Assembly (NCBI RefSeq): GCF_032191835.1
Contig: NC_083234.1
Span: 46,624,001-46,688,000, forward strand
DNA from: Heteronotia binoei
Taxonomy: Eukaryota
Length of the DNA: 64,000 bases
Direction of reading: 5' to 3'
In this document: piece by piece, positions 51,088-57,721 of the stretch
How positions within the stretch are numbered: position 1 is the stretch's first letter
Layout of the letters: the number at the start of each line of letters is the position of its first letter
Position numbers and translations under genes: made by a program
Notes under the pieces: generated by a model
Database searches by the model: none
Told to the model about the DNA's origin: nothing
What the model saw: only the letters and a program-made list of their open reading frames with translations

Positions 51088-51175
51088 ATGTCAGCATTGC
51101 TGCAAGCCACGGATGGGAACGCCGAAGGGATACAGCCAAGAGCTTTGGCAGGGACACCCAGTACTGAGAGTGGAG
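51088..51175 (+). CDS. Pitx-like gene, probable first coding exon (MSALLQ...[11 protein letters not shown])
   Basis: Strong donor G|GTAAGG in phase 1, matching the 56061 acceptor; possible upstream acceptor at 50954-55. Confidence 0.6.
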
Positions 51176-54100
51176 GTAAGGCATGGAGAAGAATGTTCAG
51201 AAATACCATGTGGCCTGGGAACTTTGTGAACCTGACCCTGAAGATTGGGTGTGTCTAAAGATGTGTTCTTAGTGTAAATTTATAACACCATAATAGACCA
51301 TGGGCTGATTTTTCTCCAAAAAAATTGGTTTGAGAAAAGCACTGCTTCCCATAGTGTGTGCACACATTTGTCCCTCACAATCATTACCCATCAAACAGCT
51401 TTGAGTGATTTTGGAAATCACTGGAAACTTTGCAAAATCTGTTATCCAATAGTGAAAATAAGAAGAGTGAATACACTGCAAGTTAAAAATAAAGAGTCTA
51501 GCATATTAAATAGTAACCCATTCATTGTGCCATAATTTTTTGCCGTCGCCAACTTTACTAGATGCATAAAGGTCACATTTATTGTTTATTAAAATATTTA
51601 TGTCTCACCTTTCCTTGTAGCTCAAGGCAATTTACAAGTTACAAGAACAAAATAGGAGTCAATTTACAAGTTACAAATAAAACAATTTAAAATCAATAAA
51701 CTAAAACTCCAGATATCAACTTTTCAGTGACCTCTCTCTTAACTGTCTAAAGAGAGAAGAGTGGAGTATAAATCTGCAATTCTTCTTCATCATCTTTTCT
51801 TCTAAAGGAAATTAGTATCAAATGAGTGTTTGCCTCCAGCCTTAGCCGATTCCTCTTATAATGAAACACTGGTAAAGGAGAGGTTATTTCTTGATACATG
51901 GTACCAACTGCAGAGTGCAAATAAGGAACCATGGGGTAGTAGCTCTTATAAATCAAGTAATCATGTGCAGGGCTTTTTTTTTTGTAGGCCACACCCCCTG
52001 ACATCACCATTGTTTTGTAGAAAAAGCCCAGCAGGAACTTATTTGCATATTAGGCCACACCCCTTGATGCCAAGCCAACTGGAACTACGTTCCTGTGTGT
52101 TCCTGCTCAAAAAAGTCCTGATCATGTGGAATTAAAGAATTAGAGGGAGAAACCTGAGAATCTAAAGGACAGACGACATGTAGGGTTGCCAGGACCAACT
52201 CAGGAAATATCTGGGAATTTTGGGGGTGGATCCAGGAGAGTCTGGAGGTGAAGCCAGGTTGTGACAAGCATGATTGAACTCCCAAGGATGTTCTGGCCAT
52301 CTTATTTAAGGGGATTACACTTCTTTTTAATGCCTTCTCTTCATTGGAAATAATAGAGGATGGGGCACCTTCTTTTGGGGCTCTTTGTATTGGACCCTGT
52401 GGTCCAATAGTTTTGAAACTTAAGTGTTTTTTGGAGGAGAGGTACCAGATGCTATGCTGAAAATTTGGTGCCTCTACCTCAAAAACAGCCCTCCTGGAGC
52501 CCCAGATAACCATGGAACAATTCTCCATTAAAGCCTACGGGGATCAGCCTCCATAGGATATAACAGAGTGCCATTCAATCCTCCCCCCACACTTTCTGAT
52601 AACCCTGAAGTGGGGGGAGGGCCTCCAAACCAGGGGATCCCCTGCCCTCAACTGGGGACTGGCAACTCTAACATGAGACATTTTTTAACGAACTGAGTCC
52701 AGGTTCCTGCATGTACAGCTCTGAAGTGGGACAAATAATGCCCCTTGGGGTTGTTTCAGTGCAGGGAAGTTGGTGCAGGGATAAGGCAGAGACCTCCTCT
52801 CCCCATGCCATGTTCCTGATCTAAGTTGGGGCCCATAGACTTTTAAAATGACATTCTGCACAGCTGCTGCAGGGGGAATGAGTCCCTGAACCCCACAGTC
52901 TGGTGTAGTTTGTACCTAATGGAAGATAATAAATAAGAAGCACAGGTATGAAGGAGCAGTTGGGTCCTCCAGATCTGTTTCTGCTGCCAGAAGCAAGTAC
53001 GTTTTCTAATGGAAACAGATCCACAGCATCTGACCTTATGCTAGAATAAAGTATTGCATAGGTTAACCATAACAGAGCATTGGGATCTATGCTATACTTG
53101 GGAACAATTGTTGATGTGATCTAAGTCATTGGGGTCATCATGACTTCTGGAATGGTGCTGAATCTGATATAATTGCTCTGTAATAAGTTAGCCTGGATTT
53201 GGGAGGCAGTGCAAGATTCCTTTTTAACCACCCAATTGATTCCAACCATTCTGTAATGATGGCGGGGAAGCTGCGTCTTCAATTTGCTATTGTAGTGTAC
53301 ACACATATAGTAACTTTACTTTTTTTAAACAAGAGGAAGAAGTAAGTCCTTGCTCCCCAGAGCTTATGGTGTAAAGTTTAGTAGTGAACCTGTGCACTTT
53401 GGGGGCATTACAGGTCAGAGAAATATGACATATAACATCACTTTCAGCTAGGGTTTCCAACCTCCAGCTATTACCGTTGATCTCCAGACAAAATCAGCTC
53501 CCTTGGAGAAAATGGCTGCTTTGGAAGGTGGACTCTATATTATACATCTCTGAGGTCCCTCACCTCCCCAAATCCCACCCTCCTCAGGCTGCACCCCCAA
53601 AGTCTCCAGGTATTTCCCAACACAGAGGTGGCAACCCTGCTTTCAGTCTATGCCAATTAAGGTCTACTATTGGTTCTCCCTCCCTCCCAGGCTAGTTTGG
53701 ACATCACAAGGGCTTTTTTCTGTGGCAAGTCAACACCAGTATTGTGGAATGACCTTCCATGGGATGTGAGGCAGGCCCCTACTGGAATGGCTTTCTAGCA
53801 CCACTCTAAGGATGGATTATTGAAAGAGGCTTTTTTGATGTTGTTAGATCAAATTTTGTTTTTATTTATTTTGGGCTTGTTTCACATTTGTTCTTTATTT
53901 GTCACTTGCTTTGGGTCTTTGGGGAGAAAGACAAGATAGAACATATAATGACAATGAGTTCAGGACAGTCCCAAGAAAATCCTTCACACCATGCACAGAC
54001 TCAGTTCTTGGACAGAACCCACTCTCAATAAGTATGGGGATGGCTTATAGAAGAACTGGACAAAATGGTAGACAGCTTGGTAGCCGTTAACTTTGACAAG

Positions 54101-57100: not shown

Positions 57101-57721
57101 GGCCCAACATCCTTCAGGGAACTGTTATGGCAGGGTGGGAATTTGAACCTGGGCCCCCAAGATCTTGGTCTAACACTCTAGCAATTCTGTACTTCTCTCT
57201 CTTTCTAGGTTTGGTTTAAAAATCGCAGAGCCAAGTGGCGGAAAAAGGAGCGGCATCAGCAGACAGAACTATGCAAAGGGGCTTTTGGCTCACCACTCAA
57301 TGCCCTGACTGGAAACTCTTATGAGGATCTCTACCCAAGCTATACCTACAATAACTGGCCCCCGAAAGGGCTGCACAACACTACCCCCATTCACAGCAAA
57401 GGATTCCAGATCTTCAACTCTATGAATCTCAATTCCTTTCCAAGCCCCACTGTCTTCTCTGCCGCTGCAGCAGCATCCATGTCTGGTGTGCCATCTCTGG
57501 AAACCTTTAATAACCTGGCGAGCCCTTCTGGGCCTCCCAGTTCAACATATGGACCAGGTGTTCCTTCACCATACATGTACAGGGATCCCTGCAACCCAAA
57601 CCTAACTGGCCTGAGACTCAGAGCAAAGCAGACACAGCCTTCTCTAGGCTATGGAGTCCCACAAAGTCCAATTATAAGCCCCAGCTCCTCCAACCACTAT
57701 AATCTGGACAGGCCAGTGTGA
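51088..57721 (+). CDS. Divergent Pitx-family (pituitary homeobox) K50 homeodomain + OAR protein, ~271 aa; probable fourth Pitx paralogue
   Basis: join(51088..51175,56061..56275,57209..57721) = 816 nt. Homeodomain [46 protein letters not shown]|[14 protein letters not shown] with the PRD-class intron between residues 46 and 47. Pitx blocks [23 protein letters not shown]-like [10 protein letters not shown], and C-terminal DRPV*. The first exon is less certain than exons 2-3. Confidence 0.9.
53449..53639. mobile_element. hAT MITE (TAGGGTTGCCA TIR family)
   Basis: TIRs TAGGGTTTCCA / TGGCAACCCTG; TSD CTTTCAGC / CTTTCAGT. Related copies near 300-490, 33000-33150, 44170-44600, 46540-46800, 52181-52670, 56483-56732 and 59270-59350. 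Confidence 0.8.
54107..54214. mobile_element. Short hAT MITE, same family, in Pitx-like intron 1
   Basis: TIRs CAGGGCTTT / AAAGCCCTG; TSD AGTTAATA / AGTCAATA. Other copies at ~5390-5585, 44310-44485, 45735-45912 and 51970-52115. Confidence 0.85.
56061..56275 (+). CDS. Pitx-like homeobox exon (homeodomain residues 1-46)
   Basis: Acceptor ttccctctag, donor AGG|gtgagg; within ORF 55898..56305. Confidence 0.95.
57209..57721 (+). CDS. Pitx-like terminal exon (homeodomain helix 3 to OAR and stop)
   Basis: Acceptor ctctctttctag; open through ORF 57422..57721. Candidate AATAAA at 58347 and 58816. Confidence 0.95.
   Translation, partial: VWFKNRRAKWRKKERHQQTELCKGAFGSPLNALTGNSYEDLYPSYTYNNWPPKGLHNTTPIHSKGFQIFNSMNLNSFPSPTVFSAAAAASMSGVPSLETFNNLASPSGPPSSTYGPGVPSPYMYRDPCNPNLTGLRLRAKQTQPSLGYGVPQSPIISPSSSNHYNLDRPV

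Follow-up and report, generated by a model that had tools for sequence, protein, structure and literature searches.

Few developmental regulators have been studied as intensively as the Pitx genes, which act in the pituitary, the eye, and midbrain dopaminergic neurons and in hindlimb identity and left-right asymmetry; work on the family reckons with three vertebrate members. Their single-copy pro-orthologue in invertebrates (Ptx1) goes by the NCBI name "pituitary homeobox x" or "x-like" in starfish, tunicates, and arthropods. In other gene families, fourth paralogues have come to light as "hidden" ohnologues of the second round of vertebrate genome duplication (2R). CRH2, Sox15, and the Kazald quartet are each reported to involve a fourth paralogue that persisted in cartilaginous and basal ray-finned fish and in some sauropsids, with independent loss in mammals and teleosts. 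The fourth paralogon of the Lbx and Tlx genes likewise held a paralogue that was retained in some lineages and lost in mammals and teleosts (PMC2446394). For Pitx, unlike these families, no such paper was found. The open literature that we searched still counts three vertebrate Pitx genes, and no description of a fourth was found in open full-text sources (subscription-only papers being outside this scope) or in a paper on "elusive genes". The four literature matches to "Pitx4" come from papers on unrelated topics. The gene reported here, a fourth Pitx gene from the gecko Heteronotia binoei for which we use the provisional name Pitx4, has probably gone undescribed so far, within a family that is itself known.

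Pitx4 occupies positions 51088-57721 on the forward strand of the window, by which we mean the whole stretch of 64,000 nucleotides that was analysed, and consists of three exons with canonical GT/AG splice sites. Exon 1 (51088-51175, +) opens with the ATG start and carries 29 codons plus 1 nt (phase 1), followed by a GTAAGG donor at 51176. The N-terminus that it encodes, MSALLQ..., is a motif conserved across the alignment of Pitx4 proteins. Exon 2 (56061-56275, +), bordered by the acceptor ...CCCTCTAG and the donor GTGAGG, encodes an acidic and serine-rich stretch, a basic KKK run, and homeodomain residues 1-46. Intron 2 (56276-57208, +; GT..AG) then interrupts the homeodomain at position 46/47. 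Exon 3 (57209-57721, +), entered through the acceptor ...TTTCTAG, encodes homeodomain residues 47-60, an ERH motif, and a C-terminal domain with an OAR-like core and a DRPV end, closed by a TGA stop at 57719-57721. The coding sequence of 813 nt translates into 271 amino acids with zero internal stops, bearing out the original prediction of an intact, correctly spliced Pitx gene. Gekko kuhli, Dermochelys, Leucoraja, and Acipenser have the same exon-intron structure, with counterparts of exon 1, and exon 3 is 88% identical to that of the G. kuhli orthologue. A high-copy repeat is located inside intron 2, at about 56409-56756.

The encoded protein displayed hallmarks of the family, and the K50 homeodomain, the 46/47 intron, the OAR-like motif, and the DRPV end that had been read from this DNA beforehand can each be seen in it. 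Exon 2 matched the Pfam Homeodomain profile (PF00046, E = 3.6e-15), and the closest solved structure is the PITX2/PITX3 homeodomain (2L7F/2LKX, E = 1.4e-33). Lys50 is present, the arm residues R2, R3, and R5 and the helix-3 residues V47, W48, F49, K50, N51, and R53 are unchanged, and the intron falls between R46 and V47, the same position as in the Pitx family. The homeodomain equals the PITX1-3 consensus at 53-54 of 60 residues, with mismatches at 6 of 60 against the PITX2 and PITX3 consensus and at 6-7 of 60 against PITX1, in line with the figure of about six anticipated for each. The unusual substitutions are V36G and A43P, together with T19M in H. binoei. The product is a K50 paired-like homeodomain transcription factor, with a predicted TAATCC (bicoid-type) binding like that of PITX1-3, which we expect to regulate transcription via a C-terminal domain whose OAR motif is partly degenerate.

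Comparison to the three known genes revealed both shared and distinguishing traits. Exon 3 is 51% identical to that of PITX3, 50% to PITX2, and 47% to PITX1. With PITX1 and PITX2, Pitx4 has the family, the homeodomain fold, and the gene structure in common; with PITX3, it shares the K50 paired-like homeodomain, the intron at 46/47, a coding sequence in three exons, a DRPV or ERPV end, and a motif of OAR type, which in Pitx4 is partly degenerate. However, PITX3 displays Val45 and a following ERN, whereas Pitx4 displays Ile45 and ERH. Ile45 occurs in 27 of 27 members of the Pitx4 clade, and the remaining 52 Pitx proteins in the comparison, among them those of invertebrates, have Val, while ERN follows the homeodomain in all of PITX1-3. 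Also unlike PITX3, the OAR motif of the gecko exon-3 protein and of all sauropsid Pitx4 orthologues falls below the Pfam threshold (PF03826), with the core LRLRAKQ present (...GLRLRAKQ... in the gecko, followed by the DRPV end); the orthologues of sharks, rays, and chimaera reach this threshold. Finally, the Cys of the CQY that precedes DRPV is absent in squamate Pitx4, the gecko protein ending in NHYNLDRPV.

The maximum likelihood tree (83 sequences, LG+C20+F+G4) was rooted with invertebrate Pitx, among which no amphioxus sequence was identified. These outgroups came from a search of representatives of 50% clusters, whose matches were for the most part unnamed or mispredicted proteins. Vertebrate Pitx genes formed a group (100/96) with the invertebrate sequences outside, and within it the gecko protein fell into a fourth gnathostome clade with support of 100/99 (UFBoot 100), made up of genes from chimaera, sharks, rays, bichir, sturgeons, coelacanth, turtles, and squamates. 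Branching inside this clade follows the species tree. Support for the other clades was 100/100 (Pitx1), 99/99 (Pitx2), and 99/97 (Pitx3). All four clades span chondrichthyans and osteichthyans, each of them containing sharks or rays. Pitx4 was recovered as the sister group of Pitx3 (97/91), while Pitx1 and Pitx2 formed the other pair (81/79). A sister relation to Pitx2 (AU test, p = 0.025) or to Pitx1 (p = 0.024) is disfavoured. An ancient fourth clade distinct from Pitx1, Pitx2, and Pitx3, as the original prediction had proposed, is thus what the phylogeny recovers. The cyclostome Pitx genes joined none of the four clades, a placement that is weakly supported (86/75), and the tree alone therefore provides no date for the duplication relative to 2R.

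Orthologues of Pitx4 were found in squamates, turtles, coelacanth, bichir, sturgeons, and every chondrichthyan group sampled. The gene had been proposed as one retained in a squamate; the retention stands, and its range is far wider. The annotated proteins of mammals, birds, crocodilians, amphibians, and teleosts yielded no member. Judging from these annotated proteins, Pitx4 seems to have disappeared independently from mammals, archosaurs, amphibians, and teleosts. The suggestion of orthology to a teleost "pitx-x" failed. The teleost proteins of 248-256 amino acids that score well against exon 3 are short isoforms that nest in Pitx2, and a pair of "pitx3-like" proteins from gobies nests in Pitx3. 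As to the name, the "pituitary homeobox x" of invertebrates is no teleost gene and bears no specific relation to the Pitx4 clade.

The genomic neighbourhood provided insights into how the gene arose. As had been read from the sequence, it lies in a NEURL3-NCAPH-ITPRIPL1 block, and Pfam matched the domains of all three genes in the window: a NEURL3 exon with a Neuralized domain (11088-11657, +; PF07177, E = 3.6e-40) and an NCAPH exon encoding condensin subunit 2, Cnd2 (26120-26584, -; PF05786, E = 3.2e-9) serve as synteny markers, and the upstream neighbour ITPRIPL1 is a single ORF of 520 amino acids with a Mab-21 fold (35473-37035, -; PF20266, PF03281). Two CNNM genes adjoin the window (C12:46.20 and 46.26 Mb). 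Paralogues of neighbouring genes were recovered on the chromosomes of PITX3 and PITX1. C6, which holds PITX3, carries CNNM at 74.7 and 79.2 Mb, NEURL1 at 73.95 Mb, and ITPRIP at 73.05 Mb, while C5, the chromosome of PITX1, carries NEURL1B at 150.09 Mb; a further ITPRIPL1 paralogue is found on C20. In skate, stingray, sturgeon, bichir, and sea turtle, the 10-kb flanks of Pitx4 contained no called gene, and tblastn with ITPRIPL1 and NEURL3 against these flanks at the skate, sturgeon, and sea-turtle loci gave no match.

Based on these findings, we regard it as highly probable that Pitx4 is a functional fourth vertebrate Pitx paralogue, born together with Pitx3 by duplication of a chromosomal block, most likely in 2R. 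The ancestral block would have been duplicated before the split between cartilaginous and bony vertebrates, and the second round of genome duplication is the most likely event. Pitx4 would then have stayed in a CNNM3/4 - NEURL3 - NCAPH - ITPRIPL1 - [Pitx4] - SNRNP200 block. Purifying selection would have maintained it in chondrichthyans, coelacanth, bichir, sturgeons, turtles, and squamates, whereas mammals, archosaurs, amphibians, and teleosts would each have lost it independently.

The alternative that survives best is that an equally ancient Pitx4 arose in the gnathostome stem through a small-scale duplication of Pitx3, segmental or tandem with later translocation, instead of whole-genome duplication. 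The tree only places the event before the chondrichthyan-osteichthyan split and does not assign the cyclostome genes to the four clades. In addition, 68 Mb of C6 separate PITX3 from the NEURL1/ITPRIP/CNNM block, which makes the paralogy there one of chromosome scale and not of tight linkage. However, three unrelated neighbour families (the CNNM pair, NEURL, and ITPRIP) share the C12/C6 distribution. Moreover, the Fgf8 paralogon is reported to pair with the Fgf17 paralogon and the Kcnip1 paralogon with the Kcnip4 paralogon, the 10q24-type going with the Fgf17/Kcnip3-type and the 5q-type with the 4-type (PMC2446394). The ((1,2),(3,4)) topology of Pitx agrees with this pairing, and we consider a small-scale origin improbable.

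NG86 dN/dS was 0.143 against G. kuhli (0.03 in the homeodomain and 0.19 in the C-terminus, at a dS of 0.25) and 0.156 against Dermochelys, and on this codon-level comparison the gene is functional and under purifying selection. Two cDNA contigs of 1097 and 1456 nt (runs X1 and X7, from two studies) join exon 2 to exon 3; they come from a related species, about 93% identical, and that the runs are RNA is our guess. Their joint (56274->57208) skips 933 nt bounded by GT..AG, with intron 2 exactly absent and exon 2 covered over 56059-56274, and the contig of run X7 extends to 57903, setting the minimum extent of the 3' UTR (57722-57903, +). Two other runs, X3 and X4, contain only the repeat of intron 2. 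Among the listed holders of the gene, there was no recorded RNA run of H. binoei, all shares being 0.07 or less. The top matches among Logan/ENA proteins included no transcript-derived member of the Pitx4 clade, which suggests that expression is low or restricted.

These observations also bear on whether Pitx4 could be a decaying or non-functional relic, on its way to becoming a unitary pseudogene, whose frame is still open by chance. The degenerate OAR, the substitutions V36G, A43P, and T19M, and the lack of recorded H. binoei RNA runs would fit such a scenario. Yet it is hard to reconcile with the low dN/dS, especially that of the homeodomain, at the dS observed, with open frames and conserved splice sites in more than 25 species across the cartilaginous/bony vertebrate split, and with the spliced cDNA contigs of a related species; we therefore judge decay to be very improbable.

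Another rival account sees in the gecko gene a PITX1, PITX2, or PITX3 orthologue that moved and evolved fast, or else a duplicate of one of these three that arose recently within reptiles. It might be favoured by the long sauropsid branch (0.44) and by the automated annotation of the orthologues as "pituitary homeobox 2-like" or "3-like", a kind of label that had been foreseen. But the H. binoei genome holds all three canonical genes at separate loci, each with open exon 3 and homeodomain exons: PITX1 on C5, ending in NACQYNS; PITX2 on C9, ending in CQYAMDRPV; and PITX3 at C6:4.70-4.71 Mb, ending in CQYAAVDRPV. The sauropsid genes furthermore join those of coelacanth, bichir, sturgeons, and chondrichthyans in a single clade, and forcing them onto Pitx3 without the fish members was rejected by the AU test (p = 3.3e-6, 57 lnL units worse). 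Together with the separate PITX3 on C6, this test rejects the reading of the gecko gene as a divergent Pitx3, and any such origin is extremely improbable.

The linkage of ITPRIPL1 and Pitx4 is genuine, because the independent chromosome-level assembly of G. kuhli is collinear with positions 41081-64000 of the window, N gap included, and SNRNP200, the human neighbour of ITPRIPL1, follows Pitx4 in both genomes (8.6 kb downstream in G. kuhli and 7.4-9.6 kb in H. binoei). An assembly gap of 128 N (45913-46040) does separate the two genes, and a scaffolding artefact across it had been raised as a concern, but the G. kuhli assembly bridges the gap with matching flanks (4059-4806 and 5055-5804 of its locus L011 correspond to 44978-45695 and 46046-46776 of the window) and both genomes continue into SNRNP200, leaving an artefact with hardly any probability unless one common reference guided the scaffolding of the two assemblies.

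Taken as a whole, the stronger statement that Pitx4 is a fourth jawed-vertebrate Pitx ohnologue, never formally described, under purifying selection since before the cartilaginous/bony vertebrate split and lost at least four times independently, is one towards which we lean slightly. A fourth ancient member alters the reconstruction of Pitx family evolution, completing a ((1,2),(3,4)) quartet and implying that the gnathostome ancestor still had the full set of four 2R copies. There are also consequences for published work. Since the orthologues are named "PITX2-like" or "PITX3-like", it is possible for expression or in situ data from sharks, turtles, and lizards to be credited to the wrong gene, and part of what has been published on "pitx3" or "pitx2-like" expression in sharks and lizards may belong to Pitx4. 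Finally, the family offers a natural test of subfunction partitioning: where Pitx4 was kept, the roles of Pitx3 (or Pitx1/2) may be split with it, while in mammals, birds, frogs, and teleosts Pitx3 (or Pitx1/2) may alone carry those roles.

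The gene at 51088-57721 on the forward strand of the window, which we provisionally name Pitx4, is an intact and spliced member of the Pitx family, and the structural details of the original prediction were all verified on the sequence. Three exons make up the gene. Exon 1 spans 51088-51175 (donor GTAAGG). Exon 2 spans 56061-56275; it is preceded by a polypyrimidine tract and AG acceptor, and its donor is GTGAGG. Exon 3 (57209-57721) likewise follows an AG acceptor and closes with the TGA stop codon at 57719-21. The spliced coding sequence of 813 nt translates into 271 aa with no internal stops. 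Exon 2 matched the Pfam Homeodomain model (E = 3.6e-15), and the homeodomain displayed Lys50 and an intron between residues 46 and 47. Of its 60 positions, 6 departed from the PITX2 and PITX3 consensus and 6-7 from that of PITX1, in agreement with the predicted divergence of about 6. The C-terminal half displayed an OAR-like core (GLRLRAKQ) and DRPV at its end; the Pfam OAR model scored below threshold on gecko Pitx4 and above threshold on the shark orthologues. The same three-exon structure rebuilt exactly the annotated orthologue proteins of Gekko kuhli, Dermochelys, Leucoraja, and Acipenser.

Pitx4, on chromosome C12 (the window is C12:46624001-46688000), is found alongside the canonical family members. 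A six-frame search with its exon 3 over the entire 2.63-Gb Heteronotia binoei assembly revealed three other Pitx loci, identified by the translation of their C-termini: PITX2 on chromosome C9 (86.45 Mb, CQYAMDRPV), PITX3 on C6 (4.71 Mb, CQYAAVDRPV), and PITX1 on C5 (134.36 Mb, NACQYNS). At all three loci, the same strand also carries an open homeodomain exon, located 3-9 kb upstream. Exon 3 of Pitx4 was 47-51% identical to those of the three genes, all of which have separate loci in this genome.

The existence of a fourth Pitx clade, as originally proposed, was borne out by a maximum likelihood tree, built from 83 proteins and 307 alignment columns under LG+C20+F+G4 and rooted with invertebrate Pitx (the first of each pair of supports is UFBoot). 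Pitx1 (100/100), Pitx2 (99/99), and Pitx3 (99/97) were each recovered, and Pitx4 fell within a fourth clade of 26 rows (100/99), as sister to the G. kuhli protein (93% identity). Branching within this clade followed the species tree: chimaera grouped with elasmobranchs, bichir with sturgeons, and coelacanth with turtles and squamates. Pitx3 was the sister of the fourth clade (97/91), and Pitx1 and Pitx2 formed a pair (81/79). AU tests rejected a grouping of the sauropsid members with Pitx3 without the fish members, at a cost of 57 lnL units (p = 3.3e-6), and gave p = 0.025 and p = 0.024 for joining the fourth clade to Pitx2 and Pitx1, respectively. The homeodomain carried Ile45 in 27/27 members of the clade, and Val in the other 52 Pitx compared, cyclostomes and invertebrates included. 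The motif after the homeodomain was fixed as ERH in the fourth clade, versus ERN.

Orthologues extend well beyond squamates. Protein searches with exon 3 retrieved many squamates (62-88% identical, G. kuhli being the closest at 88%), turtles (55-64%), and chimaera, sharks, rays, coelacanth, bichir, and sturgeons (roughly 42-51%). They were either unnamed or annotated as 'pituitary homeobox 2-like' or '3-like', much as had been anticipated of automated pipelines. We also searched annotated proteins with a profile built on 25 Pitx4-type proteins. The proteins of squamates, turtles, elasmobranchs, chimaera, and coelacanth, plus a single one from sturgeons, outscored every canonical Pitx; the bichir member and two further sturgeon members had scores overlapping those of canonical Pitx. 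The annotated proteins of this upper tier had no representative from birds, crocodilians, mammals, amphibians, lungfish, holosteans, or teleosts. The best match was an Acipenser sinensis protein (P0379, 513 aa, 541 bits) of almost double the usual length; two copies in this polyploid sturgeon may have been merged into one gene model. The tentative orthology to a teleost pitx-x failed, since the well-scoring short teleost proteins are Pitx2 isoforms and 'Pituitary homeobox x' is the NCBI label for invertebrate Pitx.

The predicted neighbours were all located by domain match: a Neuralized exon of NEURL3 (11088-11657, forward strand), a Cnd2/NCAPH exon (near 26 kb, reverse strand), and ITPRIPL1 (35473-37035, reverse strand), a 520-aa Mab-21-type ORF. 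An assembly gap of 128 N (45913-46040) separates ITPRIPL1 from Pitx4. The independent chromosome-level assembly of G. kuhli is collinear with 41081-64000 and spans this gap with flanks matching on either side, so the join is real and no scaffolding artefact. SNRNP200 lies 8.6 kb downstream of the G. kuhli orthologue on the same strand, and its homologous 5′ end is found 7.4-9.6 kb beyond the H. binoei stop codon. Hence, the local order is NEURL3 - NCAPH - ITPRIPL1 - Pitx4 - SNRNP200; in human 2q11.2, ITPRIPL1 and SNRNP200 are presumably immediate neighbours. A near-perfect palindrome lies 2.6 kb downstream of Pitx4 (60291-61038), with arms of 331 nt (60331-60661 and 60671-61001, 96% complementary), a 9-nt spacer, and outer arms of 40 nt. 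It is missing from the collinear G. kuhli locus (L011), where 21441->21448 corresponds to 60235->61049, and is therefore an insertion or foldback duplication specific to the H. binoei lineage.

The claimed paralogon was also recovered. NEURL3 (46.635 Mb), ITPRIPL1 (46.66 Mb), and two CNNM genes adjoining the window (46.20 and 46.26 Mb) on C12 have counterparts on C6, the PITX3 chromosome (NEURL1-type at 73.95 Mb, ITPRIP-type at 73.05 Mb, CNNM at 74.7 and 79.2 Mb). C5, the PITX1 chromosome, carries a NEURL1B-type gene (150.09 Mb), and no CNNM or ITPRIP gene was found on it. Such a distribution is what a block duplication leaves behind. We take PITX3 to belong to the Lbx1/Tlx1 paralogon, PITX1 to the Tlx3 paralogon, PITX2 to lie on chromosome 4, and KCNIP3 and PROM2 to lie near 2q11. 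From Fgf, Npm, and Kcnip trees, Wotton et al. (PMC2446394) derived two sister pairs of paralogons from the second duplication: the Lbx1/Tlx1 paralogon (Fgf8, Kcnip2) with the Fgf17/Npm2/Kcnip3/Prom2 paralogon, and the Tlx3 paralogon (Kcnip1) with the Nkx3.2/Kcnip4 paralogon. Given our placements of the PITX genes, the topology ((1,2),(3,4)) is precisely what this scheme predicts. A segmental duplication in the gnathostome stem is an improbable alternative origin; it draws on the 68 Mb between PITX3 and the NEURL1/ITPRIP/CNNM block on C6, on the cyclostome Pitx genes, which were unplaced among the four clades, and on a block linkage traced in the two geckos, with no neighbour seen for the shark, coelacanth, or sturgeon genes. 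In human 10q24-25, PITX3, NEURL1, ITPRIP, and CNNM presumably lie within about 2-5 Mb of one another, so the distance in H. binoei (4.71 versus 73-79 Mb) suggests a large intrachromosomal rearrangement of C6 in this lineage. Humans have four CNNM genes, and a fifth CNNM-domain gene of H. binoei (C17:9084398-9084880), besides the pairs on C12 and C6, may thus be another paralogue lost in mammals. An ITPRIPL1-like copy on C6 (109309334-109310301; protein identity 48-61%, several stops and frame changes) is probably a pseudogene.

Pitx4 also bears the marks of a working gene. Nei-Gojobori dN/dS between the squamate orthologues of H. binoei and G. kuhli was 0.143 for the whole coding sequence (dS 0.25), 0.03 for the homeodomain, 0.22 for the N-terminus, and 0.19 for the C-terminus; against Dermochelys the whole sequence gave 0.156. 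None of the listed runs containing Pitx4 was on record as RNA. Four small runs from a related organism were compared with 55800-58400, and two of them each gave one Pitx4 contig: X1 (2015 study, 1097 nt) and X7 (2024 study, 1456 nt), both about 93% identical to the window. Exons 2 and 3 were joined in both, 56275-57208 being skipped precisely at the GT..AG borders, and the contigs ran 344 and 526 nt beyond on the 5′ side and to 57903 on the 3′ side. Intronless contigs such as these, covered at depths of 11-23 in runs that amount to 28 and 123 million letters, are most plausibly cDNA. These contigs are evidence that Pitx4 is transcribed and correctly spliced in a close relative, rather than in H. 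binoei itself. Separately, intron 2 contains a very high-copy interspersed repeat (56409-56756), found in all four runs on hundreds of contigs at 90-99% identity and continuing into unrelated sequence.

The DNA-contact residues of Pitx4 are unchanged (arm R2, R3, R5; helix 3 V47, K50, N51, R53), and the closest solved structure to its homeodomain is that of PITX2/PITX3 (2L7F/2LKX, E = 1.4e-33). From these residues and structures, we infer a sequence-specific transcription factor predicted to bind TAATCC-type sites. The sauropsid-specific homeodomain changes (Q1P/L, V36G, A43P, R59K), together with the eroded OAR, suggest a changed partner interaction or autoregulation; altered site recognition would not be expected. 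Two papers offer leads on expression. A Podarcis study (PMC10740616) reported 'PITX3 / pituitary homeobox 2-like' as differentially expressed in brain and testis, and the Podarcis member of the fourth clade (P0003) carries exactly this name. Likewise, 'pitx3' was described in the catshark dental lamina (bioRxiv 10.1101/2025.08.26.672487), with a probe whose target may be the catshark 'pitx3-like' gene (P0031). Both reports may concern Pitx4, not Pitx3.

Full-text searches of the openly accessible literature turned up no account of a fourth Pitx gene in vertebrates; its gene models are already public under misleading '-like' names. Pitx4 is a well-supported, real new member of a known family rather than a new kind of system, and is of solid interest for evo-devo and comparative genomics.
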